A DNA stretch of 64,000 nt from Cyanophora paradoxa CCMP329 (Eukaryota > Plantae > Glaucophyta): positions 62,001-126,000 of the forward strand of contig QPMI01000610.1 in the NCBI GenBank assembly GCA_004431415.1, in the 5' to 3' direction. The notes under the pieces are model-generated. The model ran no database searches and had not been told where the DNA came from. It saw only the letters and a list, made by a program, of their open reading frames with translations. Position numbers and translations under genes: made by a program. Shown here piece after piece: positions 4,309 to 54,820 of this stretch (position 1 is its first letter; each line of letters starts with the position of its first letter).

Positions 4309-7300
4309 CTAGGACCCGGGGGGCATGGTGGCGGCGAAGCCGAGGGGGCTCAGGCTGCGCGCGTGCGGGCCGTTGGCGTGGTGGTAGAGGCTGTGCTGCT
4401 GCTGCTGCTTGTGGGTGAGCTTGGCGCGGTAGGGCGAGGCGGGCCCCGTGGGGTTGTAGCGCTGCGGCGAGGGCGACGAGTGGATGCCGAAGGCGGCGCC
4501 CATCGGCGGCTGCGAGAAGCGGCTCGGGTGCATGGCGATGGGCCCGCCGATGACGGGCGGGCCGAGCACGGAGGCGGCCTTGCGCTGGTCCAGCGCCATG
4601 CGCTCCGCCACCAGCTGGTCGATCCGGTCCTGGAGCATGGCGGCAACGGACTTGGCGTGCATCAGCTCCGCGTTCATCCGCTGGTCCTCCTCCTGCCCGG
4701 CCCCCGCCCCCGCCGCCTCGTGCAGGTTCCCCACCGTCTTCGCCCGCCGCGCCGCCGGCCCCGCCACCGGCGCGAGCTGCGCGGGGGCCGAGGGCGGCGG
4801 CTGCGGGAGGGCGTGCGTGCCGGCGGGCATCCCGTTCTCCGTGGTGCGCGGCGGCGGCCCGTGGCCGTGCTTCTCGTGCACGGGCGCCAGCGGGCCGCCC
4901 CCGATGCCCCGCATCACCTCCAGCGCCACCCTGCCGGCCCCCGAGCCGTCCGTCGGCGGGCGCCCCCGGAGGCGCGCGGGGCGGGGCGGGGGCTGCGCAC
5001 GCGTTGGCCTTCTCGGCGCTGGCGATGGCCGCCTGAGCCCGCTCCCGCTCCCGCGCGATGTCCTCCCTGCCGAGCCGCGCGGCGTCGGTCGGGGGAGGGG
5101 GCCGGAGACTAGTACTCGGGGATGCGCGGGGGCGGGGCCCGGGGCGCACGCGTGCTTGCGGGAGAGCTGCTCCCAGAGCTCGCGCTTCATCTCGTCGAGG
5201 AGGGCGGCCTGCGAGCCCTTCGCCTCGCGCAGCGCCGCCGTGTGCGCCGCCTTGACCTCGTTCAGCGCCGCCTGCTGCGCCGCCCGCGACTGCGCCAGGT
5301 CGTGCGTCACCCGCCGCGACTCGCTCGCCAGCGCCTGCGCGTGCTGCAGCTTGAGCTGCCCCCCGCCCCGCGCGTCAGGCGAAGAAAAGAAGACGGGGCG
5401 GGGACCGGACGCGGCGCACGTTGGTCATGGCGTCGTTGTGGGCGGCGGCGAGGGCCTCCATCTCTGCGGCGTGCGCGACGCGCGTCGCCGCGAGCTCGTC
5501 GCTCAGCCGCGCCGCCTCTGCCTGCGACGCCGCTAGCTGCTGCTTCAGGCTCACCACCAGCTCCCGCAGCGCTGCGCGCGGGAGAGCGGGAGAGTCAGGC
5601 CGCGCTCGCAGCGGGGCGGTGCGAGGGAGGGCCGGGGCGCGCCAGTCGCATCGGCGGTGCTCGCCGCGCCGCCGCCGCCGGCGCCGATCGCCTGCTCGAG
5701 CGCAGCGGTGCGCGCGGCGGCCGACTCGCGCAGCGCCACCGCGTGCGAGGCCCGCAGCTGCCGCAGGCGCCGTCAGCGGCACGTGGCGCGGGGCGGCGGG
5801 GCGGCGCGAGAGGTAGCGCAGCGCACCCCGTCGAGCTCGGCGGCGTGCTGCGCGCGGATCTGCTGCACGGTCGCCGCGTGCCGCGCCTCGGCCGCCTCGA
5901 CGGCGCTCGCCTGCGCGGCGCGGGCGGCGGCCGCCTCGTCCTGCGCCTGGCGCGCCTCGGCGAGGGCGGCGGCGAGCTGCTCCCGGAGGCTCGCGAGCTC
6001 CGCCCGGAGCGCCGCGTCGTCGGCCGCGCCGCCGGCGGTGGCGGCGACGACCGACGAGCTGCGCGTGCGCCGCGGCGAGGTCCGCGATGCCAGCGCCGCC
6101 GCCAGCTCCGTCTGCGTCGCCTGCAGCTGCGCCCGCAGCGCTGCGCCGCCCTCGATCAGAGCGGGCGGCCGGCGGCGGGCGAGGCGCGCGGCGCGGGGCG
6201 CACTCTCGACTTCGGTCGGCTCGGGCCCACGTGCGGACGGCGCCGAGGCTGCCGCCGGCGCTCCCAAACCCGCAGCGGGTGCCAGGAGGGCCGTTGCGGC
6301 GGGAGCGGCCGCCGGCACCGGCGCCGGAGCGGGCAGGGCAGCTGGCGCCGATTCCGCGGCGTCGCAAACGGTGTAGTGCCGGCTGACGAAATCGCTTTGG
6401 ATCCACAGCAGCTTCGTAAACGCCCGCACCAGCTTGTCCTTCCTCGCCTGGTCTACAGGAAGACACTGGAAGGTCGCGATGAGGGCGTCGTTGACGTAGC
6501 CGAAGAGCGCGTTCATGTGGACGAGGTCGATCTCCAGGCTCTTGTTGCCCTGCGCGGCGCGGTGAGGCCGCGGGTCTCTCGCGGGGCGACGCGGCTCCAC
6601 GTACATCCTTCTTCGTGTGGATCCGACCGACGTAGTCCACGTATTCCACGAGAGCGGCGTCGTACTCGGCAGTGACGAGCTTGACCAGGTACTTGGTCAG
6701 CTTCTCCTTGCTGCGCGGAATGTGAACACCCGGAACGCCTTGGTGGAGGCTACAGATCATCTCACCGGAACTTGATGACCTCGTGCGATACACCGAGACC
6801 CGATTCGCTTTGCGGAAGCGAGCCCGAGAAACCCTCTTGCTGAGGCATGAAGTATCTCTGCGAAAGGTTTCAGTATCCCTCGCGGAAGCACCACGAAGCA
6901 CGAGAAAGACTGGCCTTGGTTACGTCGAACGAGAAGAGTTTCGCATACACAGCATCCACGAGCGTCGGTACCAGCGGGCCGAGCACGGGTGCGATTCCCT
7001 TGATGGTCGCAATGTCGTCCGCGCTGAAGCCCATGAACCGCGCCAGGTACCCGAACCGGTACGCCGAGCTCGTGTGGACTTTCTTCATGTCGATGACCTC
7101 CACGCCCGCCTCTGCCGGGCCCGACGCCGCCGCAGCCGGCATCGGCGTCGTGATCGGTGCCTCGCCCGTGTCCACCGAGTCGCAGTTCGTGTAGTGCCGG
7201 CTCGTGAAGTCGCTCTGCACCCAGAGCAGCTTCGTGAACGCCCGCACCAGCTTGTCCTTCGTCGCCTGGTCGACGCCCCCCGACAGGCCCTGGAAGGTCG

Positions 7301-10300
7301 CGATGAGGGCGTCGTTGACGTAGCCAAAGAGCGCGTTCATGTGGACGAGGTCGATCTCCAGGTTCTTGTTCCCCTGCGACGCGTCAGCGCACGCGGCTCC
7401 CGCCGTCCCCCGCCGGGCCGCACCTCCTTCCGAGTGTGGAGCTTGCCCACCCGGTCCACGTACTCGACGAGCGACCCGTCGTACTCGGATGTCACCAGCT
7501 TCACCAGGTACTTCGCGAGCTTCTCCTTGCTGCAAACACCGTCAGCGCGGTGGCGGGCGTCCCGCGACGCGGATCCCGCTCACCGGAACTTGATGATGGC
7601 GTGCGACGTCGTCAGCGCCCCTTCGGTCCCGGGCAGCTCGCCGGTGTACCCGTCCTGCTGCGGCAGGAAGTACCGCTGCACAGCCCCCGTCAGCCGCGCC
7701 GCGCCGCGCCGCGCCGGGCGGGGCGGGGGCGGCGCGGCTCGCCTTGGTCACGTCGAACGAGAAGAGCTTCGCGTAGACCGCGTCGACGAGGCCCGGCACC
7801 AGCGGGCCCAGCACGGGCGCCGAGCCCTTGATCGCCGCGATGTCCCCGGCACCGAACTGAGCGGCCGTCAGGCACGGCTCAAGCCGTTTCTCCGACGTTC
7901 GGCCCACTCACCTCCATGAACTTGCCCAGGTACCCGAAGCGGTATGCCGCGTTCGTGTGCACGAGCTGCGGCGCGGCCGATCAGATCGGGCGACGGTTGG
8001 CGCATCGAGGGAACGGCCGAACCTTCATGTCGATCTTCTCGATGCCCGGCTCGGCGGGAGCGGCCGCCGGCGCTGGCGCGGGCAGGGCGGCAGGCGCCGA
8101 TTCCGCCGCGTCGCAGACGGTGTAGTGCCGGCTCGTGAAGTCGCTCTGAATCCACAGCAGCTTTGTGAACGCACGGATGAGCTTGTCCTTGCTCGCTTGG
8201 TCCACGTTCGTCAGGCCCTGGAAGGTCGCGATGAGGGCGTCGTTGACGTAGCCGAAGAGCGCGTTCATGTGGACGAGGTCGACCTCCAGGTCCTTGTTGC
8301 CCTGCGGCACCGCGCGTCGGATGCCATGCCGCGCAAGCCCGGGGCAACAGCGCGGGCGCGCGCACCGCCTTCTTGGTGTGGACCTTGCCGACGAAGTCGA
8401 CGTACTCGACGAGCGACCCGTCGTACTCGGATGTCACCAGCTTCACAAGGTACTTCGCGAGCTTCTCCTTGCTGCGAACACCGTCAGCGCGGCGACGGGC
8501 GTGGCGCGACGCGGATCCCGCTCACCGGAACTTGATGACCTCGTGCGTCAACGTGAAGCTCGCCTCGCTCTGCGGCAGTGAGCCCGAGTAGCCCTCCTGC
8601 TGCGGCATGAAGTATCTCTGCGATCGATGTCAATGCCAGCGCCATGGAACCCACGACACACGGTGGGAAATGCTGGCCTTGGTCACGTCGAACGCGAACA
8701 GCTTTGCATACACCGCGTCCACCAGCGTCGGCACCAACGGCCCCAGAACCGGAGCAGATGCCTTTATCACCGCAATGTCGTCCGCGCTCATCTGCTCTTG
8801 CCGTAAACACAACTGCGGGAAAAGAATGCGCGAGGCGACACGGACCCCCATGAACCGCGCCAGGTACCCGAACCGGTACGCCGAGCTCGTGTGGACTTTC
8901 TTCATGTCGATGACCTCCACGCCCGCCTCTGCCGGGCCCGACGCCGCCGCAGCCGGCATCGGCGTCGTGATCGGTGCCTCGCCCGTGTCCACCGAGTCGC
9001 AGTTCGTGTAGTGCCGGCTCGTGAAGTCGCTCTGCACCCAGAGCAGCTTCGTGAACGCCCGCACCAGCTTGTCCTTCGTCGCCTGGTCGACGCCCCCCGA
9101 CAGGCCCTGGAAGGTCGCGATGAGGCGTCGTTCACGTAGCCAAAGAGCGCGTTCATGTGGACGAGGTCGATCTCCAGGTTCTTGTTCCCCTGCGACGCGT
9201 CAGCGCACGCGGCTCCCGCCGTCCCCGCCGGGCCGCACCTCCTTCCGAGTGTGGAGCTTGCCCACCCGGTCCACGTACTCGACGAGCGACCCGTCGTACT
9301 CGGATGTCACCAGCTTCACCAGGTACTTCGCGAGCTTCTCCTTGCTGCAAACACCGTCAGCGCGGTGGCGGGCGTCCCGCGACGCGGATCCCGCTCACCG
9401 GAACTTGATGATGGCGTGCGACGTCGTCAGCGCCCCTTCGGTCCCGGGCAGCTCGCCGGTGTACCCGTCCTGCTGCGGCAGGAAGTACCGCTGCACAGCC
9501 CCCGTCAGCCGCGCCGCGCCGCGCCGCGCCGGGCGGGGCGGGGGCGGCGCGGCTCGCCTTGGTCACGTCGAACGAGAAGAGCTTCGCGTAGACCGCGTCG
9601 ACGAGGCCCGGCACCAGCGGGCCCAGCACGGGCGCCGAGCCCTTGATCGCCGCGATGTCCCCGGCACCGAACTGACTCAGTGAGCGGCCGTCAGGCACGG
9701 CTCAAGCCGTTTCTCCGACGTTCGGCCCACTCACCTCCATGAACTTGCCCAGGTACCCGAAGCGGTATGCCGCGTTCGTGTGCACGAGCTGCGGCGCGGC
9801 CGATCAGATCGGGCGACGGTTGGCGCATCGAGGGAACGGCCGAACCTTCATGTCGATCTTCTCGATGCCCGGCTCGGCGGGAGCGGCCGCCGGCGCTGGC
9901 GCGGGCAGGGCGGCAGGCGCCGATTCCGCCGTGTCGCAGACGGTGTAGTGCCGGCTCGTGAAGTCGCTCTGAATCCACAGCAGCTTTGTGAACGCACGGA
10001 TGAGCTTGTCCTTGCTCGCTTGGTCCACGTTCGTCAGGCCCTGGAAGGTCGCGATGAGGGCGTCGTTGACGTAGCCGAAGAGCGCGTTCATGTGGACGAG
10101 GTCGACCTCCAGGTCCTTGTTGCCCTGCGGCACCGCGCGTCGGATGCCATGCCGCGCAAGCCCGGGGCAACAGCGCAGGCGCGCGCACCGCCTTCTTGGT
10201 GTGGACCTTGCCGACGAAGTCGACGTACTCGACGAGCGACCCGTCGTACTCGGATGTCACCAGCTTCACAAGGTACTTCGCGAGCTTCTCCTTGCTGCGA

Positions 10301-13300
10301 ACACCGTCAGCGCGGCGACGGGCGTGGCGCGACGCGGATCCCGCTCACCGGAACTTGATGACCTCGTGCGTCAACGTGAAGCTCGCCTCGCTCTGCGGCA
10401 GTGAGCCCGAGTAGCCCTCCTGCTGCGGCATGAAGTATCTCTGCGATCGATGTCAATGCCGGCGCCATGGAACCCACGACACACGGTGGGAAATGCTGGC
10501 CTTGGTCACGTCGAACGCGAACAGCTTTGCATACACCGCGTCCACCAGCGTCGGCACCAACGGCCCCAGAACCGGAGCAGATGCCTTAATCACCGCAATG
10601 TCGTCCGCGCTCATCTGCTCTTGCCGTAAACACAACTGCGGGAAAAGAATGCGCGAGGCGACACGGACCCCCATGAACCGCGCCAGGTACCCGAACCGGT
10701 ACGCCGAGCTCGTGTGGACTTTCTTCATGTCGATGACCTCCACGCCCGCCTCTGCCGGGCCCGACGCCGCCGCAGCCGGCATCGGCGTCGTGATCGGTGC
10801 CTCGCCCGTGTCCACCGAGTCGCAGTTCGTGTAGTGCCGGCTCGTGAAGTCGCTCTGCACCCAGAGCAGCTTCGTGAACGCCCGCACCAGCTTGTCCTTC
10901 GTCGCCTGGTCGACGACCCCCGACAGGCCCTGGAACGTCGCGATGAGGGCGTCGTTGACGTAGCCAAAGAGCGCGTTCATGTGGACGAGGTCGATCTCCA
11001 GGTTCTTGTTCCCCTGCGACGCGTCAGCGCACGCGGCTCCCGCCGTCCCCCGCCGGGCCGCACCTCCTTCCGAGTGTGGAGCTTGCCCACCCGGTCCACG
11101 TACTCGACGAGCGACCCGTCGTACTCGGATGTCACCAGCTTCACCAGGTACTTCGCGAGCTTCTCCTTGCTGCAAACACCGTCAGCGCGGTGGCGGGCGT
11201 CCCGCGACGCGGATCCCGCTCACCGGAACTTGATGATGGCGTGCGACGTCGTCAGCGCCCCTTCGGTCCCGGGCAGCTCGCCGGTGTACCCGTCCTGCTG
11301 CGGCAGGAAGTACCGCTGCACAGCCCCCGTCAGCCACGCTGCGCCGCGCCGCGCCGCGCCGGGCGGGGTGGGGGCGGCGCGGCTCGCCTTGGTCACGTCG
11401 AACGAGAAGAGCTTCGCGTAGACCGCGTCGACGAGGCCCGGCACCAGCGGGCCCAGCACGGGCGCCGAGCCCTTGATCGCCGCGATGTCCCCGGCACCGA
11501 ACTGAGCGGCCGTCAGGCACGGCTCAAGCCGTTTCTACGGCTCAAGCCGTTTCTCCGACGTTCGGCCCACTCACCTCCATGAACTTGCCCAGGTACCCGA
11601 AGCGGTATGCCGCGTTCGTGTGCACGAGCTGCGGCGCGGCCGATCAGATCGGGCGACGGTCGACGCATCGAGGGAACGGCCGAACCTTCATGTCGATCTT
11701 CTCGATGCCCGGCTCGGCGGGAGCGGCCGCCGGCGCTGGCGCGGGCAGGGCGGCAGGCGCCGATTCCGCCGCGTCGCAGACGGTGTAGTGCCGGCTCGTG
11801 AAGTCGCTCTGAATCCACAGCAGCTTTGTGAACGCACGGATGAGCTTGTCCTTGCTCGCTTGGTCCACGTTCGTCAGGCCCTGGAAGGTCGCGATGAGGG
11901 CGTCGTTGACGTAGCCGAAGAGCGCGTTCATGTGGACGAGGTCGACCTCCAGGTCCTTGTTGCCCTGCGGCACCGCGCGTCGGATGCCATGCCGCGCAAG
12001 CCCGGGGCAACAGCGCGGGCGCGCGCACCGCCTTCTTGGTGTGGACCTTGCCGACGAAGTCGACGTACTCGACGAGCGACCCGTCGTACTCGGATGTCAC
12101 CAGCTTCACAAGGTACTTCGCGAGCTTCTCCTTGCTGCGAACACCGTCAGCGCGGCGACGGGCGTGGCGCGACGCGGATCCCGCTCACCGGAACTTGATG
12201 ACCTCGTGCGTCAACGTGAAGCTCGCCTCGCTCTGCGGCAGCGAGCCCGAGTAGCCCTCCTGCTGCGGCATGAAGTATCTCTGCGATCGATGTCAATGCC
12301 GGCGCCATGGAACCCACGACACACGGTGGGAAATGCTGGCCTTGGTCACGTCGAACGCGAACAGCTTTGCATACACCGCGTCCACCAGCGTCGGCACCAA
12401 CGGCCCCAGAACCGGAGCAGATGCCTTTATCACCGCAATGTCGTCCGCGCTCATCTGCTCTTGCCGTAAACACAACTGCGGGAAAAGAATGCGCGAGGCG
12501 ACACGGACCCCCATGAACCGCGCCAGGTACCCGAACCGGTACGCCGAGCTCGTGTGGACTTTCTTCATGTCGATGACCTCCACGCCCGCCTCTGCCGGGC
12601 CCGACGCCGCCGCAGCCGGCATCGGCGTCGTGATCGGTGCCTCGCCCGTGTCCACCGAGTCGCAGTTCGTGTAGTGCCGGCTCGTGAAGTCGCTCTGCAC
12701 CCAGAGCAGCTTCGTGAACGCCCGCACCAGCTTGTCCTTCGTCGCCTGGTCGACGCCCCCCGACAGGCCCTGGAACGTCGCGATGAGGGCGTCGTTGACG
12801 TAGCCAAAGAGCGCGTTCATGTGGACGAGGTCGATCTCCAGGTTCTTGTTCCCCTGCGACGCGTCAGCACGCGGCTCCCGCCGTCCCCCGCCGGGCCGCA
12901 CCTCCTTCCGAGTGTGGAGCTTGCCCACCCGGTCCACGTACTCGACGAGCGACCCGTCGTACTCGGATGTCACCAGCTTCACCAGGTACTTCGCGAGCTT
13001 CTCCTTGCTGCAAACACCGTCAGCGCGGTGGCGGGCGTCCCGCGACGCGGATCCCGCTCACCGGAACTTGATGATGGCGTGCGACGTCGTCAGCGCCCCT
13101 TCGGTCCCGGGCAGCTCGCCGGTGTACCCGTCCTGCTGCGGCAGGAAGTACCGCTGCACAGCCCCCGTCAGCCACGCTGCGCCGCGCCGCGCCGCGCCGG
13201 GCGGGGTGGGGGCGGCGCGGCTCGCCTTGGTCACGTCGAACGAGAAGAGCTTCGCGTAGACCGCGTCGACGAGGCCCGGCACCAGCGGGCCCAGCACGGG

Positions 13301-14948
13301 CGCCGAGCCCTTGATCGCCGCGATGTCCCCGGCACCGAACTGAGCGGCCGTCAGGCACGGCTCAAGCCGTTTCTACGGCTCAAGCCGTTTCTCCGACGTT
13401 CGGCCCACTCACCTCCATGAACTTGCCCAGGTACCCGAAGCGGTATGCCGCGTTCGTGTGCACGAGCTGCGGCGCGGCCGATCAGATCGGGCGACGGTCG
13501 ACGCATAGAGGGAAACGCTGAACCTTCATGTCGATCTTCTCGATGCCCGGCTCGGCGGGAGCGGCCGGAGCTAGCACGGGCGCAGAAGCCGTCGCCGGAG
13601 CCAAGGCAATGCCGGGCGCCAGGGCTAGGGCGGATGCTGATGACGACGAGGCGAGCAGCGGCGCCGCGGGCGCGGGCGGTGGGGAGGCGAGGTTGAGGGC
13701 CGGTGCCGCAGCAGGCGTTGAGGGCGCCGCCATCGGCGACCCCGCCGACTGCGGGCTCCCCACGCCGGCGGCGCTATCGACGCGCCTCTTTTCCTTCGAG
13801 ATGGGGCGCGCGGCCACGAACGGCGGCGGCGGCTCCTCCCCGACGCTCTCCAGCTGCGCGGGGGCTTAGCTGTGGCCTCCGGTCCCAACCGGGCCCACGG
13901 GCGCCCGCACGCACCCACTTGTCCGCCTCCGCCAGCTCCGCCGGCGTGCTGCGGTCCGCGTCGATGTCGCGCTCCACGCGCGCGCTCAGCTTCGCCACCC
14001 GCGCCGCGATCGCCGCCTTGGCCTCCGCCGTCTGCGAGCCGGCGCCTTAGGCGGCACTCCGGGGCCGGCGGGGCGGGGCGGGGGCGGCGGGACGGGGGCG
14101 GCGGGGCGGACCTGCGCGGCGGGCTTGGCGGCGTACTCGGCGATCTTGGCGAGGCGGGCGTCGATGGCGGCGTCGCGGGCCTGCTTCCGGGCGATGCGGT
14201 CGCTGCCCTCGAGGACGCTGGCGAGGAGCCACTCGAGCCCGGCGCTCATCGAGCCGTTCCACTTGGTCTGGTCCGCCAGGCCGCACGCCTCGACGATGCG
14301 CACGACGGCGCCGGCGCCGGCCGCGAGCGCCTCGACCTCGGAGAGGGGCACGCAGCCGTCCAGGTCGCGCTTGGTCGCGAGCACCAGCATCGGCTTGCCC
14401 TTGAAGCGCGGGTTCGCGCCGACGCTCGCCATGACCGCCCGCGCCGCCTCCACCGACTCCTTCTTCGACGTGTCCACCGCCAGGATGCTCGCGTGCGACT
14501 TCACGAGGATCCCCAGCAGCTTCGGCGACTCGCTGTACGGCCCCCGCGCGTCGATCTTGAACTGCGCCCCGCGCGTGAGCCAGCCGCCCCCCGGGCGCCG
14601 CCGGCCGGCCCCGCGGGTCGGGCCCACCTTCAGGTACATGCCCGAGGACGCGAGCTTGGAGAGCCGGTCATTCTCTGCGGCGGATCGAGCGGCATGAGCG
14701 GCGGCCGGCGCGCGCGGACGCGGCGCCGCGGCGCTGATGGCGGGGCGCGGGTCCTCACCCTTGACAAGCTCCCTGCGGGTCACGGCGCTCCATCAGAGGC
14801 GGTCGGTGGGCAGGAGCGCAACCAACAGAGCTAACCCGAACTTGCGGAGCAGGCTGCGAACTCCGAAGCCCTTGTGAGAGGCAACGAAGATTTCGACCAG
14901 CTTGTTAGCTGTCGGCGGCACGTCGGCCGCCTTCTCCTTCTTGCTCAT
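4309..14948 (-). CDS. Arl13/Arf-like degenerate GTPase domain + 8 tandem protoglobin (sensor-type globin) domains + C-terminal coiled coil
   Basis: ATG at 14948: MSKKEK...EIFVASHKGFGVRSLLRKF...KIDARG...FKGKPMLVLATKRD...VEAC...GLEWLL. Then eight copies of YRFGYLxxFMxFxxxDIAxIK...VDAVYAKLF...YF...VGxxHT...HMNALFGY...AFTKLLWxQSD...RHY between about 13470 and 6375. Ala/Glu/Arg/Gln-rich coiled coil to a TAG at 4309. One apparent 1-nt frameshift at about 9124. Confidence 0.85.
7032..13565. repeat. Tandem array of an about 1.82-1.84 kb two-globin unit (about 3.6 copies, near-identical including introns)
   Basis: The anchor ccatgaaccgcgccaggtacccg recurs at about 7032, 8849, 10671 and 12511. Homologous ORFs start at 7916, 9739 and 11579. 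Confidence 0.95.
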
Positions 14949-15362
14949 GCTGCGAAGAGTCAGCGGTAGCGGTGTACGCTCGCCTCTGCAGGAGCCTCTC
15001 CGCCAGGACGATGATAAATGGGGATCACCTTTAGCTAGGAAGTGCGCCAGGCGGATCCAACGACGCAGTAGCGTCCGATACTATCTGCAGGCAGCCGCGC
15101 GCCTGGCCTTGCGGCTTTCGACGGGTCGCCCACAAGACTTCGCAAGCTGTAGAGGAAGCAACGTGCTGGTGCTCGATAAGCACAGGTATAGGTGCGCTTT
15201 ACTTGATGGAGCGCGGAAGAGCCATAAGGAAGCCGCTGCGGCTGTCTTCTCCGATCCTCGACTCTTTTAGCTTAGGACGCCTGAGGGTACTTGGTATTGA
15301 GACTTTAGGCTGTACCCCATCGAACCCCCTTCGTTCGCAGCTTCGGGGCCCGGGTCGCCGCC

Positions 15363-18300
15363 ATGTCGGCCTGGGACCTTTTCTTAGCCTGCAAAGGTCC
15401 GCGTCGTCTTCCCGAGAGCCCGCACCGCGCCTCTCTGATGGGTCGCCCTTCCGCACCGATGCTCGCAGACGGGTGCGCGCGCCGAGCGCCGAGCTTTTGG
15501 ACCTCTCCTTGGCCTCTACTAGTTCTCGCCTGGCTCGGCCCTCGGCCCCGCTGGCCGGCTGCTCGTCGCGCATATGCATGCGCCCTTTTGATTTGGTCGC
15601 GGCGCAGGGACGTGGCGGGCGTAGAGAAGTACCTCACTATGGGCATAAACGTGAACGTCGCTGACTGGGTGCGTGCTTGCCAGGAACGCCGCGTCGCATA
15701 GCTAAAATTCGAGGCCGGGCGCCGCGCCGGCGCCCGGCGCGTACGTACACATATATACGCCGGCGGCCGCGGCGCCGGCCGGCGCCGCCGGCCTGCAGCT
15801 GAACCTCCCGCGCGCGCCACACTCTGTTATTTGACACCTTGGGGCCCGCAGGACGAGCGGCGGGTCATCCACATGGCCGCCAACTACGTGCGCACGCAGC
15901 GCTCGGCCTCGGGCGCCCCCCGCGCGCGGCGGCAGCGCCCCTCTTATGCCTCAGCGCCTCTCTTAAGCTTCGGCGCTTCGCCGCAGGGCCACGAGGAGAT
16001 GCTGCGCATGCTGCTGGCGCGGGGTGCGGCCGGGGCCCCTCCTCCACTATAGCTAGGTACCCGGTCTGCGCGCACGGGAGCGCTCAGGGGGCGCCGCGCG
16101 CGTGCAGGGGCCGACAAGAACATCGCCGACAAGTGGGGAATCACCCCGCTCCACGTGCGCCCCGCCTGCTCTGCAGCAGACCTTCGATCCCGCCCCGCCC
16201 GCGCCGCCCCTCACGGCGCCGCAGGAGGCGTGCATGAACGACCACGCGGACATCGCGCTGGTCCTCATCGAGGCCGGGGCCGACCTCGGCGCCAAGAACA
16301 ACGAGAAGAAGGCGCGCGCGCGCGCGCCCCCTCCCCTCCGCTCCGCCGGCCCCGCGCCGGCCCTCACGCGTACGGGACGCGGGGCGCAGACGCCGATGGA
16401 GCTGGCGTCGCCGGCGCTGCGGCGGGAGCTCATCGAGCGCTCCCTGCGGCACGTCTCCTGGGAGCTCGTACGCCCCGCCCGCCCGCCCCATCCCCAACGG
16501 CGCCGGCGACCGCGCCCCCGCTGACGCGCCGGCGCGGCGGGCGCGCGCAGTTCCACGCGGCGAAGAACGGGAACCTGGAGACGGTGCGGCACCTCGTCGA
16601 GTCCGGCCGCGTCGACATCAACGTCCAGGTCCCTCCATTCGATGCCCCTCGGGATTCCGGCGGAGCACACGGCAGCTCGAGGCGCGGGGCTGACGGGGCG
16701 CGGGGGCGGGCGGGGCGGGGGCCAGGACTGGGACGCGCGGGCGCCGATCCACCTGGCGGCGGAGTACGGGCACGCCGAGATGCTCGACTGGATGCTCGCC
16801 AACGGCGGCGACAAGAACATCCAGGCCCCCGCCCCGCCCCGCCCCGCCCCGCCCCGCCCCGGGGCTTCCGTAGCTGAGGGCGTGTCGCGAGCAGGACCGG
16901 TGGGGGGTGACGCCGAGCCACGAGGCGGCGAAGCACGAGCACTTCGAGATCGCCGTCTCCCTCCTGCGCGCCCCGCCCGCCTCCCGCCCTCCTGCCGGCG
17001 CCCGGCGTTGACGCGTGAGGGCGCAGGGAGGCGGGGGCGGACATGAACGTGGTGGACGAGGCGGGGCGGCGGGCGCTGGAGCTCGCGAGCCCCGAGCTCC
17101 GCCGCCTGCTCGACGAGAAGCTCGACCTCTGGAACTCCGCCATGCGCGGCGACCTCGGCCCGCCCCGCCCCGCCCCGCCCCCACGCCCGGCCCGGCCTCC
17201 GCGCAGCGCCCTGAGGCGGCGGGCAGAGACGGTGCGGAACATCCTGGCGGGGAACGCGATCGGCGTCCACTCGGTCGACGCCGACGGCTCCACCGCCCTC
17301 TTCTCCGTCCGGCCCCCCACCCCCCGCCCGCCCCGCCCCCTCCCTCTTCCGCGCGCGACGCGTACGGCCCCGGCAGGCCTGCGCGGGGGGCCACATGCAC
17401 GTCCTCAAGTACCTCCTCATCATGGGCGCCGACCGCAACCACCAGAACAAGCGGTCCGCCTCCGCCCGCCCCCCGCCCCCCGCCGCCCGCCGCCCCCCGC
17501 GCGCCCTCTGACCGCGAGCCCGCGCCTCGCTGGGGCCCGGCGGGCAGGGGCGAGACGCCGCTCATGTACGCCCTCGTCCACAAGCGCGACACCGTCACCC
17601 GCGTGCGCCCCCTCCGCCTCCCCCCCCCCCCCCCCCCCCCCCCCGCCCCCTTCTTCCAAGCCCGAGACTACCCCCACCCCCTCACCCCCCCTCTCCCCCC
17701 CCCCCTCCGTCTCCCCTTCCACCCCCCAAATCTCCTCCTTAAGAACTCTCGGGCTGACCCGCCTCGTCCGCCAGTACCTGGTGGACAACGGGGCGGCGCT
17801 GGCGCTCAAGACGACCCGCGGCCACACCGCACTCTACTTCGGCGCGCACGGGGCCCTGGCCCTAGGCCTAGCCCTGGGCCTTCAGCCCCGGCCCCGCCCT
17901 CGTCTCACCGGCCCGCTCCGCCCCGCAGCGCTCAAGTCGCGGCGGCGGCGCATGGTCCGCCTCCTCATCCAGAAGGTGGCGATGGCCGGGCCCCGCTCCG
18001 CCCCGCCCGGCGCCCTCGGCCGAGCTCGAGGCGGGGGCAGGGGGCGGCCTTCTCGTTCGGGGAGCCGTACTGGTCCCTCGTCAAGGACGCCGTGAAGCGC
18101 TCCGAGGCCGAGTTCTTCGCCTGTCCGCCCCCGCCCCCGTCCGAGCCCCCACCCAGCGGTCTCCCGGCGCTGAGCGGGGCGGGCGGGGGGGCAGGCCTGG
18201 AGGAGAACGGGATCGGGCTGACGGCGGAGGTGCTGGTGGAGGTCATGCTCGCCGCCGGGCGCTACGGCTCCGAGCCCGTCCTCTCCATGTGCCTCAAGAA

Positions 18301-29558: not shown

Positions 29559-30462
29559 ATTTCGATCTGGACCCTTTCGACCTTGAAAAGTCATGTTCAT
29601 GATTGGCTATAGGGCCCCGCCGTACGCGTCGGACTAGTATTGGTGTTGAATCATTGAATTTCACGATCAGTCTGGTTTTAGATGTTGACTCTAGAAGCAT
29701 ATCTCTGGCCCAGTGGATCTAGATATGTGACAGTGAGGGAACTCAGGGAAGGTCGCGGGCCCTGAGGAGATCTAGACGCCGTGACGTCGATCGCGACAGC
29801 CTCACATGCGCATGCATATGATCATGATCATGATGCCTGCGCGGCACCGCATGCGCAGCCATTGCAATTGAATCATGGCATTGGCTGTTCGATGGACTTC
29901 GGGAGCTCGAGTGCAACATGCATGCGCAGTGCTAGAAGAATTTCAAACGTGAACCGTGAACCCAAATTGTTTGCAAAAATCGATTGCGATTTGAATTCAT
30001 CGGATCTCAGGATAGTATCACTCAAAATTAGTACACTGAGTCACGCAACTAGTAGGCTACCGAAAGCTAACTAGAAATGATGAAAGCGAGCTGCCTGAAG
30101 CTAGCGTGGAAACGGCCTGTCATGATCACTGTGGACATCGATTGTAAAGCACACTCCGATCAAGAGGAGGCCTCATTAATGTTGTAAAACGGCCTGCCAG
30201 GCTGTCTGTCACTGAGAACATCGGTTGGAAAACACTGGCGATCAAGAGGAAACGAGAGGGTTCGCGCAGAAACGTCCTGGCGAAGGCACTGCGGCGCCAC
30301 GGGATGCACCTGGAAGCACAGGCGCGCGCAAGGCGCGGGGCTGGCCTGCCTCTCTCGCAAGGCGCGGGAAGCTTGACGTCTAGATCTAGATCTCTCTGTG
30401 CAGAAAATGGATACAGTTTTCAAAGAAGGGGGACACTGTGCAGGCTGCTGAGCGGTGGCTGG

Positions 30463-41427: not shown

Positions 41428-44400
41428 ATGGCGGCACCCGCGCCGCCCGGCGGCACTGGCGGCGGCACCAAGCGATTCGTAGGTGCGCAGAGCATGAGCC
41501 CGACCACGTGTGACGTTGTCCGGGCTGAGCTGGGACACATGCGAGCTTTAGCTAATCCGGGACGAGCTTGCGATGTTGCCCCTGGGGCCCTGCTAGAATC
41601 GGCGACCGTAGCAAGGCCGATGCGCATCATGTATCAGCCGATGCTGCCTAGTCGCAACCCCTCCAGCTCCCTCCTTAGCGCCGCGCACACTCACGCCCCC
41701 GCGCTGCCGCAGACATCTTCGTTGCTTCCAACAGCGGCGCCGGCGTGCGCTCGTTGCTGCGGAGGTTCGGCGAGCTCGTCAAAGGTCGGCACCTCGCTCA
41801 GGCATCCAAGGCGTGCACCTGACCTCGCCCCAGGAAATGAGCGCCTCATGCGGCTGGCTTCAGACGGCCTGAACCTCAAAGTGCGCGCCGCCTCGGGCAG
41901 CCCGCGCCGCCCGCCGCTGACGCCGCGCCGCCGCGGCGCGTGCAGTTCAAGATCGACACGCGGGGCCCCTACGCGGACACGCCGGCGTTCCGGGCGCTCC
42001 TGGTGAAGGCCCAAGCGTGCATTCTGGTCGCGGACACGTCGCAGGAGGGCGCGGTTGCTGCGGCGAAGGCGGCGCTGGGCGCGGTCGGGGGCAACGGGCG
42101 CTTCAAGGGGAAGCCGATGCTGATCATGGCGAACAAGCGGGACGTGGACGGCTGCCTCCCGCTGGCGGACCTGGAGGCGGCGGCGGGGGCGCAGGGCGTG
42201 CTGGCGAGCACGAAGCTGGTCGAGGCGTGCGGGGCGCCCGGCGAGGCCAAGTTCAACGCGGCGATGAGCGCCGGGCTGGAGTGGCTCCTCGCCAGCGTCA
42301 TCGACGGGGCCGAGCGCCTCGCCCGGAAGCAGGCCCGCGACGCCGCCATCGACGCCCGCCTGGCCAAGCTCGCGGGGCTCGAGGGCAAGCCGCCGCCGCC
42401 GGCGGTCCCGGGGGCCGGCGTGGGCGCCCCCTCGGACCCGGGGAAGGCGGCCGAGGAGCACCGGGCGGCGATCGCGGCGCGGGTGGCGAAGCTGAGCGCG
42501 CGCGTGGAGCGCGACATCGACGCGGACCGCAGCACGCCCTCGGAGCTCGCCGCCGTGGACAAGTGGGTGCGCGCGCCTCTCCGCGGCGCCCCGGGCGGGG
42601 CGGGAGGCCGTGGCTGAGCCCCCCGCAGCTGGAGAGCCTCGGGGAGGAGCCGCCGCCGCCCTTCCTCCCCAGCCCCTCCCCCTCGCGCGCCGGCCTGGCG
42701 ACGGCGCCGGCGGCCTCGCTGGGGGGCCCCTGGAGACGAAGCCCGGGTCGGCGGGGGGCGCCGCGGGCCCGCTGGGGCGCTCGGCCTCGGTCAAGCGGCG
42801 CAGCGAGTCGCCGGCGCAGCAGCCCGGCGTCGAGCGCATCGACATGAAGGTCCGCCCCGGGCCCGCGCCGCGCCGCCCCGCCGCCCCGCCCCCCGCCCTC
42901 CCGCCCGGCTCAGCTCGTCATGATTCGTCACGGCTCAGCTCGTTCACACGGACCCAACGTACCGATTCGGGTACCTCTCCAAGTTCATGGGGGTACGCTT
43001 CGCCTGCTTGCTTCGGCGGGGCGGCGCGGCGCGTCCTGAGGGGCGCGGCGCGCGTGCAGTTCATGCCCGAGGACGTGGCGACAATCAAGGGCTCGGCGCC
43101 CGTGCTGGGCCCGCTGGTGCCGGGCCTCGTCGACGCGGTCTACGCGAAGCTCTTCTCGTTCCACGTGACCAAGGCGAGCCGCGCCGCCCCCGCCCCGCCC
43201 CGCACGGCGCGGCGCGGCGCGGCGCGGCTGACGGGGGCTGCGCAGCGGTACTTCATGCCGCAGCAGGACGGGTACACCGGCGAGCTGCCCGGGAGCGAAG
43301 GGGCGCTGACGACGTCGCACGCCATCATCAAGTTCCGGTGAGCGGGATCCGCGTCGCGACACGCCCGTCGCCGCGCTGACGGAGTTCGCAGCAAGGAGAA
43401 GCTCGCGAAGTACCTGGTGAAGCTGGTGACATCCGAGTACGACGGGTCGCTCGTCGAGTACGTCGACTTCGTCGGCAAGGTCCACACCAAGAAGGCGGTG
43501 CGGCCCGGCGGGGGACGGCGGGAGCCGCGTGCGCTGACGCGTCGCAGGGGAACAAGAGCCTGGAGATCGACCTCGTCCACATGAACGCGCTCTTTGGCTA
43601 CGTCAACGACGCCCTCATCGCGACCTTCCAGGGCCTGTCGGGGGGTGTCGACCAGGCGACGAAGGACAAGCTGGTGCGGGCGTTCACGAAGCTGCTCTGG
43701 GTGCAGAGCGACTTCACGAGCCGGCACTACACGAACTGCGACTCGGTGGACACGGGCGGCCTGTCGGAGCCACCGCCGGCCCCGCTGCCGTCGACCTCGA
43801 AGGCGGCCTCCGTGCCAGAGATCGGCGTCGAGATGATCGACATGAGGCAAGTGCACACAAACGCGGCGTACCGCTTCGGGTACCTCTCCAAGTTCATGGT
43901 GGTGCGTTCTGCTCTTGGAAGAGGCGGCTCGTGCATTGGGGGGGGCTAAGCTGATCGTCCCTTTAACTCGGTCTCGCAGTTTGGGCCGGAGGACGTGGCG
44001 GCGATCAAGGGCTCGGCGCCCGTGCTGGGCCCGCTGGTGCCGGGCCTCGTCGACGCGGTCTACGCGAAGCTCTTCTCGTTCGACGTGACCAAGGCGAGCC
44101 GCGCCGCCCCCACCCCGCCCGGCGCGGCGCGGCGCGGCGCAGCGTGGCTGACGGGGGCTGCGCAGCGGTACTTCATGCCGCAGCAGGACGGGTACACCGG
44201 CTCGCTGCCGCAGAACGAAGCGAAGTTCACAGTTTCCCACGAGGTCATCAAGTTCCGGTGAGCGGGATCCGCGTCGCGACACGCCCGTCGCCGCGCTGAC
44301 GGTGTTCGCAGCAAGGAGAAGCTCGCGAAGTACCTGGTGAAGCTGGTGACATCCGAGTACGACGGGTCGCTCGTCGAGTACGTCGACTTCGTCGGCAAGG

Positions 44401-47400
44401 TCCACACCAAGAAGGCGGTGCGCGCTGCTGCCCCGGGCTTGCGCGGCATGGCATCCGACGCGCGGTGCCGCAGGGCAACAAGGACCTGGAGGTCGACCTC
44501 GTCCACATGAACGCGCTCTTCGGCTACGTGAACGACGCCCTCATCGCGACCTTCCAGGGCCTGACGAACGTGGACCAAGCGAGCAAGGACAAGCTCATCC
44601 GTGCGTTCACAAAGCTGCTGTGGATTCAGAGCGACTTCACGAGCCGGCACTACACCGTCTGCGACGCGGCGGAATCGGCGCCTGCCGCCCTGCCCGCGCC
44701 GGCGCCGACGGCCGCTCCCGCCGAGCCGGGCATCGAGAAGATCGACATGAAGGTTCGGCCGTTCCCTCGATGCGCGACCGTCGCCCGGTCTGATCGGCCG
44801 CGCCGCAGCTCGTGCACACGAACGCGGGATACCGCTTCGGGTACCTGGGCAAGTTCATGGAGGTGAGTGGGCTGAACGTCGGGGAAACGGCTTGAACCGT
44901 GCCTGACGGCCGCCCAGTTCGGTGCCGGGGACATCGCGGCGATCAAGGGCTCGGCGCCCGTGCTGGGCCCGCTGGTGCCGGGCCTCGTCGACGCGGTCTA
45001 CGCGAAGCTCTTCTCGTTCGACGTGACCAAGGCGAGCCGCGCCGCCCCCGCCCCGCCCGGCGCGGCGCGGCGCGGCGCGGCTGACGGGGGCTGCGCAGCG
45101 GTACTTCATGCCGCAGCAGGACGGGTACACCGGCGAGCTGCCCGGGAGCGAAGGGGCGCTGACGACGTCGCACGCCATCATCAAGTTCCGGTGAGCGGGA
45201 TCCGCGTCGCGGCACGCCCGTCGCCGCGCTGACGGAGTTCGCAGCAAGGAGAAGCTCGCGAAGTACCTGGTGAAGCTGGTGACATCCGAGTACGACGGGT
45301 CGCTCGTCGAGTACGTCGACTTCGTCGGCAAGGTCCACACCAAGAAGGCGGTGCGGCCCGGCGGGGGACGGCGGGAGCCGCGTGCGCTGACGCGTCGCAG
45401 GGGAACAAGAGCCTGGAGATCGACCTCGTGCACATGAACGCGCTCTTTGGCTACGTCAACGACGCCCTCATCGCGACCTTCCAGGGCCTGTCGGGGGGCG
45501 TCGACCAGGCGACGAAGGACAAGCTGGTGCGGGCGTTCACGAAGCTGCTCTGGGTGCAGAGCGACTTCACGAGCCGGCACTACACGAACTGCGACTCGGT
45601 GGACACGGGCGAGGCACCGATCACGACGCCGATGCCGGCAGCGGCGGCGTCGGGCCCCGCCGAGGCGGGCGTGGAGGTCATCGACATGAAGAATGTCCAC
45701 ACGAGCTCGGCGTACCGGTTCGGGTACCTGGCGCGGTTCATGGGCTTCAGCGCGGACGACATTGCGACCGTGAAGGGAATCGCACCCGTGCTCGGCCCGC
45801 TGGTACCGACGCTCGTGGATGCTGTGTATGCGAAACTCTTCTCGTTCGACGTAACCAAGGCCAGTCTTTCTCGTGCTTCGTTTTGCTTCCGTGATGGATT
45901 CTGAAACCTTTCGCAGAAATACTTCATGCCTCAGCAAGAGGGTTACTCGGGCTCGCTTCCGCAAAGCGAATCGGGTCTCAGTGTATCGCACGAGATTATT
46001 CAGTACCGGTGAGATGATCTGTATCCCCCAACAAGGCGTTTCCCGGGTGTTCACATTCCGCGCAGCAAGGAGAAGCTCACCAAGTACCTGGTCAAGCTCG
46101 TCACTGCCGAGTACGACGCCGCTCTCGTGGAATACGTGGACTACGTCGGTCGGATCCACACGAAGAAGGATGTTCGTGAAGCCGCGTCGCCCTGTGAGAG
46201 CCCTGCGACCTCACCGCGTCGCGCAGGGGAACAAGAACCTGGAGATCGACCTCGTGCACATGAACGCGCTCTTCGGCTACGTCAACGACGCCCTCATCGC
46301 GACCTTCCAGTGTCTTCCTGTAGACCAGGCGAGGAAGGACAAGCTGGTGCGGGCGTTCACGAAGCTGCTGTGGATCCAAAGCGATTTCGTCAGCCGCCAC
46401 TACACTGTCTGCGACGCCGCGGAGTCGGTGCCGGCCGCCGCGTCCTCAGCCGCACCCTCCATGCCGAACCTGGGCGCCGGGCTCGAGGTGGCGCGCCTCA
46501 AGGAGCAGCTCGCGGCCGCGCAGGCCGAGGCGAAGCGGGCGCAGGAGGTGCGCGGGGGCCCGACCGCCCAGTCCGCCCCGCCCCGTCTCGGGCCCCTCAC
46601 CGCCCGTGGGCCGCGCAGGAGACGGCCTCGCTGCGTGCGGAGCTGGCGCGGGCCAAGGCCCCCGCGAGCCCCAAGGCGGGGGGCCCGGGCCTGGCGGAGG
46701 ACATCCAGGCGCGGATGTCGGCGCGGCGGCGGAGCTCCGTGGGCGGCCTCGGCGGGGAGGACGTCGCGCGCCTCGCCGACGAGGTCGCGCAGGCCAAGTC
46801 CCTCGCCGCAGCCACGCAGGCCCGCCTCGACGAGATGGTCGCCGCGCGCGTCGAGCTCGAGCGCCAGGCGCAGCAGCGCGAGGCCGCGGCGCGCGCCGAG
46901 CACGCGCGCGAGCTCGAGGAGCTGCGGCGGCGGCACGCGCGCGAGCTCGACGACGAGCGGCTGCGCTTCGCGGAGGAGCGGCGGCGCTGGGAGGGCCAGG
47001 GCGCCGACGAGGCGGCCGCCCTGCGGGGGAGCTCGAGGAGGCCCGCGCGCGGGCGGCGGCCGCCGCCGTCGAGACGGCCGACGCCCGCGCCGAGGCGGTC
47101 AGCTGCGCACGCCTCGCCGACTCCGAGGCGGCGCGGGCCAAGGAGGCCGAGGCGCGCGCCGCGGCCGCCGCGGAGGAGGCGGCGCAGGCGCGGGAGCGGG
47201 CGGCGGCGGAGCTGGCGGCGGCCCGCGAGGCCTCGGCGGCCGAGCTCTCGGCGGCGCGGCAGGAGGCGGCCAAGTCGGTGCGCGCGGGGCGGGGCGGGGC
47301 GGGGCGGGGCGGGGCGGGTCGGGGCGGTGGGAGGCGGCGTTGTTTTGACGCTGCGCGCCAGGCGTCGCTTGCCGAGGCGGCAGAGGCTAAGGCCTCGCGG

Positions 47401-50400
47401 GCGGCCGCTGATGCCGACGCGGCGCGCGCGGAGGCGGCCGCGGCGCGCAGCGAGGCCGCGGCGGCGCGGGCCGACGCGGCCGAGGCGCGGGAGGCCGCGG
47501 CGGCGGGCAGCGCGGTGAGCGCACCCCGGCGCCGGCTTCATCGCCGTCCTCCAGAATTCTGCTCCTCACCGGGAGCCGCAGAGCGCGGAGCAGGCGGCGG
47601 CGGCCGAGGCGGCGGCGGCGGCGCGGGCGGCGGCGGCGAAGGAGGTGGAAGCCGCGCGGGCGGCGGCCGAGGAGCGCGCGGAGCGGGCGCGGGCGGATAG
47701 CGAGGCGGCGCGCGCCGAGGCGAATGCCGCCCGGGCCGAGGCGGCCGCCGCGAAGGAGGCCGCTCGTCTGGTGCGGGGGCGCGCCGCGCGACGCCGGCCC
47801 CTTCTGACGCCGACGGGTCGGGCAGGCCGAGGAGGCGCGGCTGCGGCTCGAGGCGGAGCTGAAGGAGGCGCGCCAGGCCAGCGGCGGCGGCGGCGGGGGC
47901 GAGTCCTCCGACGCGAAGCAGGCGGTGCGCGCGGGCGCTGCCGGTGCACAAGCAGGCGCCCCGTCTGACCCGGCTCCGCAGGCGGAGGCGCTGCGGGTGG
48001 CGCTGCAGGAAGCGAGCGAGGCGCGGGCGGCCGTCGAGCAGGAGCTGCGGGCCGCGCAGGCCGTCGCCGCGCAGGCCGGCGCCGCCCTCGCGGTGCGTTT
48101 GCGCGGGAGGGCCGGCGGGCGGCGCGCGCCGGAGCGCCTCACCGGCGGGCGCCGCAGGGCGAGGCGGCGACGGCGCGGGCGCGGCTCGAGGCGGAGCTCG
48201 CGGCGGCGCGGGAGGAGGCGGAGGCGGAGCGCGAGCGGGCGGCGGCGGCGCTGGCGGCGGCGGAGGCGGAGGCGCGTGAGGCGCGGGCGGCGGGCGAGCG
48301 GGAGGCGGCCGGCCTGCGGGCGGCGCTGGCGGCGGCGCAGCGGGAGGCGGCGGCGGCGCGTGAGGAGGCGGCGCGCGATGTGCAGCGCGCCACCGCCGCC
48401 AGCGGCAGCACCGCGGTGCCCGGCGCCGCCTCCGCCACCCGCGCCGCCTCCGCGCGCTCTGACGCCGGTCGCGCTGCCCGCCCTCGCGCAGGCGGCCGTG
48501 GCGGAGCTGACGGGGGCGCTGGGGAAGGCGCGGGAGGAGGCGGCGCGGGCCGGAGTGCGGGCGGCGGCGGCGGAGGCGCAGGCGGAGGCGGCGAAGAAGG
48601 AGCTCGCCGAGTCGCAGGCGCGGTCGCGCGAGACCGTCGAGCGCCTGGAGCGGGAGCTGGCGGCCGCGCGCGCGGCGCGGGCCTCGGCCGCCGCCGCCGA
48701 CGCCGCCGCCCTCGAGTCGCGCCTCGCCGCCGAGCGCGAGCGCGAGCGGGCCGCCTCCGCCGCGCAGATCGCCGTCCTCGAGTCCCGGGTTCGAGCCCCC
48801 GCCGCCCCCTTCCCTCTCCCTCGCTGGGTAGGCGAGCGGGGCGGGGGCAGAGGCGGGAGCTGGAGGACCGCCTCAAGATCGTCTCCGCCCGCCCCTCGGA
48901 CGCCTCGGTGCGCTCAGCGCGGCCCGAGGGGTGCAGCCCTTTTTTCTGACGGGGCCGCCCGGGCAGACGCCGGCGGCGGCGCGGGGCCTCGAGGAGCGGC
49001 TGCAGGCGCGGGAGCGCGAGCACGCCGCCGTCGTGGCCGCCCTCCAGGCCCGCCCCGCGCCCCGCGGCGCCCTCCCCCTGTCTGACGCGCGGGCGCGCAG
49101 GAGGCGGTGGTGCGGGCGGTGGACGAGGGGGGCGGGCGGCGGTGGCGGAGCGGGAGGCGGAGCTCGGGGCGTGGCTCGAGGGCCTCGCCGCCGACGCCCG
49201 CGAGCGCCGCCTCGCCGTCCTGCGGGCCCTCGACGAGGGCGCGCCCGGCCGCCCCCGCGCCGAGGCCGAGCTGCGCGCCCTGCTCGAGGCCCTGGAGGCC
49301 GGCGTGGCGCCCCGCACGAAGGCGGCCGACGAGAAGCGGGCGACGATGCGGCGGCAGCTCGCCGAGGCGGAGCGGCAGCTCGCCGAGGAGCGCGAGGCGC
49401 GGCGGCGGGAGCGCGCGCACGCCGAGGAGCACGCGCGGCGCGTCGAGGAGAAGTGGCTCGCCCGGCTGCGCGCCGCCGACGAGGCGGTCTCGCGCGCCCG
49501 CGCCGAGGCGGAGGCGGCGGTCGCGGCCGGCGCCGGCGCGCAGGAGCGCATGCGGGAGGCCGTGACGGCGGCCGAGCGGGCGGCGGCGGGGCGGCGGGGC
49601 GCCGAGGAGGCGCACCTCTCCCTGCTCCTCGGCGTCCTCGAGGGCCGCCCGGAGGCCGGGGCCGAGCCGGGGCCGCTGCGGCCGCCCTCGTCGGGCCCGA
49701 CGCGCCGGTGGCGGTGGCGGAGGTGGCGGCGGAGGAGGCGGAGGCGCTCGAGCTCCAGCGGGCGGCGGCGGCGGCGGCGCGGCAGCTGCGCGCCGACCTG
49801 CGCGGCTGGGCGCGGGCGTACGCCGAGGCGGCGCGGGCGGGCGGGGCGGGCCCCGACCACAACGTGATCGCGGCGCACGCGTCGGCGCGGCTCGTGCGCC
49901 TGCGCGAGGCCGAGGCCCGCGAGGCCGGCTACGCCGCCCGCGTCCGCGCCCTCCGCGACCGCCTCGCCGCCTCCGCCGCCGCCGCCGCCGCCGCCCTCGT
50001 CCGCAGCGGCCTGCTCGGCGGGCCCGGCCCGGCGGCGGCGGCGGCGGCAGTGCCGCCCCGGCCACGGCGGACGGGGACCCGCAGCGGCTGCGGGCGGCGG
50101 CGGACGCGGAGGCGGCGCGGTTGGAGGGGTACCGCGTGGAGCGGGCGCGCCTCGAGGCGGACGTGCAGCGGCTGCGGCACGCGGCGATGGCCGCCGCGAG
50201 CGAGTGGCGCGCCGCCGGCTTCGGCGGCGGGGGCAAGAAGCGCGGGCACTACCGTCCGGCGGCCGCCGCCCCCGAGCCCCTGCTCGCCACCGCCCCCTCC
50301 TCCCTCTACGCCTCCGCCTCCGCGCCCCTCCTCGCCCCCGCCCCGGCCCCCGCCCCGGGCCTCGGCTCCTCCCCCTCTGCCCCGGCCCTGCCGCACCTCC

Positions 50401-50648
50401 CCGCGCGGGCCCTGCCCCCCATCATCGGGTCCCCGCACTCGCCGGAGCCGGACGCGGCCGCCGGGGCGGGGGCGTGGGCCGTCCACACCAAGGGCGGGGC
50501 GGGCCCGCACGCCCTCGGGCACGCGCACGCCCTCCCCCCGCGGGCCCTCGCCGCGGGGACGGTCTCGCCCCTCCGCGGGGGCAAGTCCCGCAGCCCCTCC
50601 CCGCCCCCGCTGGCCGCCGCCCCCGCCGGCCACGTCGCTGCGCGGTGA
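41428..50648 (+). CDS. Arl13/Arf-like degenerate GTPase domain + 4 tandem protoglobin domains + long coiled coil (paralog of 4309-14948)
   Basis: MAAPAPPGGTGGGTKRFV|DIFVASNSGAGVRSLLRRF...KIDTRG...FKGKPMLIMANKRD...VEAC...GLEWLL. Globin domains at about 42940-43735, 43850-44655, 44810-45590 and 45690-46405. Ala/Glu/Arg coiled coil from 46480 to 50200, with apparent 1-nt indels near 47030, 49670 and 50050. TGA at 50648. Confidence 0.85.
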
Positions 50649-51655: not shown

Positions 51656-52055
51656 CTTTGTTGGGGTGGGGAGCAGACGGGTCCCGGGTACGGTAGTTCG
51701 GACGCGCTTCTTCAGCTGCCGCGTTCGCTCGCTCGTTTGGTTCGCCGAAGATGTCGTCCCTGGGGTCTGGCCCCTCCGATTCGAAGCTAGGGACAAGCCC
51801 ACGCATCAAGGATGGTGCTCGATCGCGTCGCGCGCCCCACGTGCGCCGATCGGTAGCGTGATCATTCCCTGCTGCGCAGTCATCAGCCCGATGCACCGCG
51901 GCGAGCACGGCTCTGGCCGCGGGTGCGCTGAGCCCCAGCTTTCGAACCGTCCATGCGATCCCCGCACATGCGGGCGTGCCGCGTGCACCTAGATGCTCTA
52001 ATTCTTGCATACGTACGCTTCTAATGCGTTTCCGCACCCTCCCGCGCGCAGAAAC

Positions 52056-54794
<2,739 letters not shown>

Positions 54795-54820
54795 GGCCCC
54801 CGATCGACCCCGCGCCCCCA

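Follow-up and report, generated by a model that had tools for sequence, protein, structure and literature searches.

Does a single gene of the glaucophyte Cyanophora paradoxa CCMP329 join a degenerate ARL13-type GTPase to a row of eight haem-binding globins and, if so, what might the product do? The question is raised by a gene on the minus strand of a 64,000-nucleotide stretch of DNA (contig QPMI01000610.1, positions 62,001 to 126,000; hereafter the window), for which a preliminary description made from the letters alone had proposed an Arf-family head, eight intact sensor-type globins and a coiled-coil tail in one protein. The reading frame opens with an ATG at 14948 and closes with a stop codon at 4309-4311, and the public model tig00021348_g20525.t1 from EukProt aligns to 14948-4312 exon by exon; the introns, where checked, are 48-83 nt long and have GT-AG or GC-AG ends. 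The layout is an Arf-family head followed by eight globins and an Ala-rich helical tail (Table 1).

The continuity of this frame was analyzed in short-read contigs from two DNA and two probable RNA runs, placed on positions 11730-15100, with the tail outside this region. The RNA contigs omit the predicted introns between 11963 and 14835. One of them links exon 1 to exon 4, the 60 letters in between being exactly the two small exons, and a second, overlapping contig links exons 4, 5 and 6 and extends to the beginning of the repeat at 13538; introns of globins 1 and 2 are spanned by further joints. In two RNA data sets, splicing could be followed along one path that begins at exon 1 and reaches globin 2. 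Because of these joints, because exon 6 contains the linker plus the first residues of globin 1, and because all globin-globin junctions of the public model are intra-exonic and stop-free, the head and the globins form one reading frame, in agreement with the fusion proposed earlier. The same stop-free junctions ruled out a reading of the locus as separate genes. The gene is therefore real and spliced, and its transcription covers at least the head and globins 1 and 2.

The globins were identified with a Pfam search, in which eight PF11563 stretches were found (E 5.7e-275, 901 bits versus a cut-off of 25). As initially noted, each of the eight units has Tyr B10, Phe CD1 and His F8, and these residues align with the same positions of the Methanosarcina protoglobin; position E7 aligns to Arg, E11 is Leu and B9 is Val, with no distal His. 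The haem residues are at least 90% conserved among 71 relatives. An AlphaFold (AF2) model of the globin computed with these relatives reached a predicted local distance difference test score (pLDDT) of 95 and showed the 3/3 fold of the S family with a pre-A (Z) helix. Its Foldseek matches in the PDB were protoglobin (template modelling score, TM, 0.73), AfGcHK and HemAT, the closest solved folds also including DosC, and its TM against a planctomycete sensor globin cluster was 0.95. A phmmer search of the PDB with a single globin gave no match, whereas a profile search did. Pfam matches of the repeats to PX, DUF1186, SOUL and similar families had no passing stretch and were discarded as summed noise. 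Haem binding is well supported by this predicted fold and by these residues, which sustains the haem part of the multi-haem O2/nitric oxide (NO) scaffold of the preliminary description; O2 and NO are the ligands that we infer.

The nearest sequences come from planctomycetes, Fabomonas, Physarum, Naegleria and fungi and are single-domain sensor globins, a group described previously, with the fungal members reported as single-domain proteins (PMC3287990). As judged by sequence, the Cyanophora domains are eukaryotic sensor single-domain globins (SSDgb or Sgb) of the fungoglobin kind and not archaeal protoglobins: identity to the latter is 17%, Trp B9 and Phe E11 are absent, and the nearest relatives are eukaryotic and planctomycete Sgbs. 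The assignment to the protoglobin family thus holds at the level of PF11563, but the domains are not orphans of prokaryotic type, since relatives with a single domain occur widely among fungi and protists. In a midpoint-rooted tree of 69 rows, with short hits left out, the fused domains are sister to the stand-alone Cyanophora globin tig00000900_g5395 with a support of 99/98. This topology favours an in-genome donor over a direct bacterial origin, which was rejected, and indicates that the fused globins descend from an in-genome single globin. The ratio of nonsynonymous to synonymous divergence (dN/dS) between globin types, 0.14-0.27, indicates purifying selection on the globins.

A contig look-up for the stand-alone globin gave no result. 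Residues 1-65 of tig00000900_g5395 form a Ser/Thr/Ala-rich, nearly acid-free leader that begins M-A-F, presumably a plastid transit peptide, which it resembles. Three relatives of the globins combine an S globin with something else in one chain, namely a truncated globin in Basidiobolus, molybdopterin-synthesis domains in Entophlyctis and a B56 fragment in a third; all three could stem from gene models joined in error.

The eight domains fall into just two near-identical types and a single variant, a feature absent from the preliminary description. The array is arranged as (A-B)x4 with a unit of about 1.83 kb, and the units are 98-99% identical, introns included. At the domain level, A-type globins share 99.5-100% identity and B-type globins 100%, A versus B being 80% identical; a third variant, found as the last domain, has 95% identity to the last globin of a second gene in the window (see below). 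This pattern indicates that the (A-B)x4 array is a recent expansion. In run X2, one unbranched contig at 13292-13567 combines variants that are assembled in different A units, which suggests that the array was homogenised differently in the sample of that run.

The head comprises a putative pseudo-GTPase (residues ~17-205) and an ARL13-type helix after the G domain. When a two-sequence profile of the head was compared with the PDB, Chlamydomonas ARL13B (E 1.3e-5) and ARL3 (4.4e-5) were retrieved, followed by Arf/Arl proteins only, and the neighbours of the head in the ESM Atlas were ARL13A/B and an algal Arf-like cluster. These results agree with the Arf-family fold and the ARL13 affinity first suggested for the head. 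With Pfam Arf the outcome was divided, the match being weak and under the cut-off for this copy (E 0.01) and passing for its paralog (3.4e-5). A single-sequence AlphaFold model of the head, with a pLDDT of 47, was not used for fold searches. The P-loop reads S-H-K-G-F-G-V-R here and S-N-S-G-A-G-V-R in the paralog, so that Val-Arg replaces Lys-Thr in both, and switch I (PTxGF) is absent; the DxxG- and NKxD-like motifs are DARG and TKRD in this head and DTRG and NKRD in the paralog. As proposed, the head has, by these motifs, lost the residues for a GTP cycle and is a pseudo-GTPase, although it may still bind guanine. ARL13B activates ARL3 as an effector-like guanine nucleotide exchange factor (GEF) through switch I, switch II and helix 6 (PMC4868535). 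A normal GEF role appears unlikely for the head, because ARL13B uses switch I and the head lacks it.

Vargova et al. (2021; PMC8358228) reported Arl13L, an offshoot of Arl13 that is specific to glaucophytes, highly diverged and present as several paralogs; neither the eight-globin gene nor its paralog is part of their data set, and no globin is mentioned there. Compared by eye with Arl13L2a-c of C. paradoxa and Arl13L2 of Gloeochaete, the head shares a degenerate P-loop (G-x-R-S-L/V-L in place of GKTT), a G-[QKE]-L-[VI]-[KR]-E block after helix 1, a KP...NKQD-like block, G-L-x-W-L, an R-D-A/K-A helix and long helical tails, and it differs by a DxxG-like motif that the listed Arl13L proteins lack. 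The head therefore best fits, from this visual comparison, the Arl13L2 offshoot of ARL13. Chlamydomonas ARL13B (4M9Q/5DI3), the best or second-best PDB match, also has a G domain, a helical extension and Pro-rich sequence; in contrast to it, the head lacks the P-loop Lys/Thr, PTxGF, an N-terminal Cys and RVxP, and the globins are inserted. Compared with the Arl13 of Cyanophora, the region from P-loop to DxxG is about five residues shorter. The membrane targeting that had been considered possible found no support in the protein: Gly2 and RVxP are absent, the first Cys is residue 128, and a convincing membrane helix is lacking; about half of Arl13 proteins also lack an N-terminal Cys (PMC8358228).

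The same architecture is present in an inverted paralog on the plus strand, whose public model tig00021348_g20532.t1 (EukProt) maps to about 41.6-50.6 kb. Its true start is likely the ATG at 41428, with an intron to ~41714, rather than the start of the public model, because the N-terminal match to the eight-globin gene is then restored. The two heads are 62% identical with a synonymous divergence (dS) of 0.53; invariant blocks lie around the NKxD-like, G5 and helix-6 positions, and the helices after the G domain are strongly conserved. The tail of the paralog is longer than that of the eight-globin gene, and the two tails hardly match in sequence. Its last two globins, on the other hand, differ from globins 1/7 and 8 by a dS of only 0.05-0.06, and positions 6337-8622 match 44161-46439 in inverted orientation with 95.6% identity over 2.3 kb. 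The simplest reading of these sequences would be gene conversion between the two arrays after the gene split. Since the architecture is retained in two diverged genes, chance read-through is unlikely. The inverted 2.3-kb repeats might also allow the intervening 35 kb to be inverted.

The helical part of the tail of the eight-globin gene is Ala/Glu/Arg-rich and proline-free. The coiled coil originally assigned to it was not borne out, a crude heptad test on the tail being not significant (p 0.05-0.4) and a Pfam scan of the tail finding no family. No enzymatic output domain was detected by Pfam in the whole protein. At ~5573-5641 (minus strand), a small GC-AG intron of the tail is apparently retained in the public model, which has another one in its place; the alternative would keep an in-frame helical segment.

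What could such a protein do? The reading that we prefer, and to which we give about an even chance, is that one long predicted protein acts as a tethered multi-haem buffer or scavenger of O2 or NO. In the simplest history, the ancestor would have been an Arl13L2 gene with a dead G domain and a helical tail, similar to that of Gloeochaete, whose Arl13L has a degenerate G domain and a long C-terminal tail with no globin annotated (PMC8358228). A globin would have been inserted into the low-complexity linker of this gene and duplicated to an A-B pair, and the pair would have been multiplied by unequal crossing-over. Address and oligomerisation would be the roles of the dead head and the tail, and binding of O2 and/or NO by the eight haems would be a matter of dosage: at low oxygen they would buffer or scavenge locally rather than act as an on/off switch. 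Capacity fits better than switching because the protein lacks an output domain, its linkers are long and flexible, and its eight haem sites are near-identical. A possible precedent is a fungal sensor-type globin (fungoglobin), which binds haem and O2 and aids growth under 0.5% O2 (PMC11034785). The site of action may tentatively be placed at the flagellum or flagellar base, where ARL13 acts, although a ciliary location is a guess from ARL13 descent, and the broader proposal that glaucophytes reuse dead ARL13 as an address module that carries an S-globin array to the flagellum as an O2/NO store or scavenger is rather doubtful. Several observations weigh against the tethered buffer: the short-read RNA contigs reach globin 2 only and cannot phase all eight repeats, the protein has no lipid anchor or RVxP motif, the coiled coil of the tail is only putative, the head is weakly constrained (dN/dS ~0.55), and globin 5 carries a frameshift in this assembly.

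Two other functions have to be considered. In a gas sensor, a haem ligand would alter the partners of the head or tail, such as ARL3 or parts of the intraflagellar transport machinery, in a reversed version of globin-coupled sensors. S-family globins are sensor domains in bacteria, AfGcHK, HemAT and DosC are among the closest solved folds, ARL13B is an effector-like GEF (PMC4868535), and the helices after the G domain are strongly conserved between the paralogs. Nevertheless, this reading is unlikely: a Pro/Ala linker of ~100 residues between the head and globin 1 is poor for allostery, eight near-identical copies fit capacity over switching, the GEF activity of ARL13B needs switch I/II while switch I is missing here, and Cyanophora retains a normal Arl13 (PMC8358228). 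The protein might instead be a soluble multi-domain haemoglobin whose Arl13L part is a decaying leftover supplying promoter and scaffold. The dN/dS of the head is higher than that of the globins, its motifs are degenerate, and apart from the paralog the databases yielded no relative of the head within the threshold, in searches limited by length and shared words so that the blank says little. A passenger head is likewise improbable, as it has been maintained in frame in both paralogs with 62% identity and invariant blocks, and its dN/dS is probably inflated by the high GC content, which would compress dS.

Other alternatives concern the array itself. Globin 5 has three private indels, two of them in homopolymer runs: an exonic 1-base deletion near 9126, an 8-base insert at ~9676-9683 and an intronic 1-base deletion. 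The deletion near 9126 shifts the frame to a stop at 8902-8904, and the public model bypasses it with a 53-nt intron at the cost of 18 residues of helix G. The earlier count of eight globins stands with the eight PF11563 stretches, but not their description as intact. If the lesion were real, either a shortened protein with the head, four whole globins and no tail or a splice form with a damaged globin 5 would result, and no eight-globin form would be made in this strain. Such a lesion is present in the assembly, and the 53-nt stretch has GT...AG ends and is used by a gene finder; we consider it improbable all the same. The three private indels are confined to globin 5, as expected from an RSII/Quiver consensus of a repeat, short reads cannot correct such a repeat (PMC6704402), and the globins downstream of globin 5 show no decay. 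The contigs of the four runs list some other copy variants, but in none of them was the deletion seen at the corresponding position of globin 1, an absence that is weak evidence. Because the assembly was built from RSII reads with majority-rule short-read correction (PMC6704402) and no contig has the deletion, the frameshift is probably an assembly error rather than a real lesion. Lastly, the array length could be an artefact and the true globin number smaller, as units of 98-99% identity including introns might suggest. This is very improbable, since the units hold distinct variants, one of them present in all four runs, 15-kb inserts can span the 7-kb array, and in run X2 the contig depths of stretches with 3, 5 and 4 assembled copies are ~3, 5 and 4 times that of unique sequence, a rough measure. 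In run X1 the depth, equally rough, is about one copy above the assembled number, which could reflect one further unit or a GC effect; contig depth is no copy number and counts as a hint only.

Both parts of the protein belong to named groups, and their combination was found in one species only. Among 1.84 billion representative proteins, the search (245 matches, of this subfamily only) returned no other multi-globin relative save the paralog, and no tandem S-family globin or ARF-globin fusion was found in the databases or literature searched, in line with the lack of a described equivalent claimed before; a literature search on Cyanophora globins found no papers. The sensor single-domain globins (PF11563) share 30-52% identity, the common fold and the haem residues with the units studied here, but contain one S globin each instead of eight, or four, in tandem, and they often have a hydrophobic C-terminus (23/52 mid-length matches). 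Tandem globins have been described in the T family and among animal haemoglobins, and there are known multidomain ARF proteins; a 2020 review gives multi-unit forms for the T family only. Multi-unit truncated globins and invertebrate multi-domain haemoglobins have tandem units and internal duplication as well, but they are T-family or animal globins with no GTPase-like head. Globin-coupled sensors (HemAT, DosC, AfGcHK) also place an S-type globin within a chimeric protein, with a single N-terminal globin and an output domain at the C-terminus in contrast to eight internal globins and no output family, and neither they nor androglobin have an Arf-type head or repeats. The locus therefore presents two undescribed additions, a tandem S-family globin array, the first multi-unit form of this family within the searches made, and an ARF-family/globin chimera. 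With it, the unstudied Arl13L group of glaucophytes acquires a concrete cargo, and for the eukaryotic sensor globins, whose role is barely known, the rise in copy number makes buffer versus sensor testable. If flagellar, the protein would connect globins with cilia in one more case, independent of androglobin and cytoglobin, which provide a precedent for globins tied to cilia.

Table 1. Features of the eight-globin gene and its paralog in the window (globin units of the minus strand start at the higher coordinate)
Feature	Coordinates	Strand	Remarks
Whole gene	4309..14948	minus	public model tig00021348_g20525.t1 (EukProt), 2594 aa, ~49 exons
Exons 1-4 (14948-14836, 14772-14759, 14674-14628, 14561-14113)	14113..14948	minus	Arl13L2-like pseudo-GTPase (by likeness)
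Exon 5	13916..14031	minus	second charged helix, strongly conserved with paralog
Pro/Ala/Ser linker	13536..13853	minus	exon continues into globin 1 start
Globin 1 (type A)	12671..13535	minus	
Globin 2 (type B)	11785..12574	minus	
Globin 3 (type A)	10831..11697	minus	
Globin 4 (type B)	9945..10734	minus	
Globin 5 (type A)	9008..9857	minus	private indels in this assembly
Globin 6 (type B)	8122..8911	minus	
Globin 7 (type A)	7191..8034	minus	
Globin 8 (terminal type)	6373..7094	minus	without first B-type intron
Pro/Ala linker, Ala/Glu/Arg-rich helical tail, Pro/His-rich end	4309..6372	minus	
Paralog tig00021348_g20532 (2207 aa model)	41428..50648	plus	same head, four globins, longer helical tail

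Other genes were observed in the window. As ordinary flanking neighbours of the eight-globin gene, Pfam placed a poly(ADP-ribose) glycohydrolase (PARG) gene at ~1800-3631 and a long ankyrin-repeat gene at 15600-20400, both on the plus strand. By eye, a RAPTOR-like gene was noted at ~30400-35600, a small LYR-motif-like gene at 51284-51802 and a leucine-rich repeat (LRR)/NTPase-like gene at 58800-64000, all on the minus strand, as well as an IMP dehydrogenase-like gene at 52000-54800 on the plus strand with a 193-bp tandem repeat inside (53976-54462).

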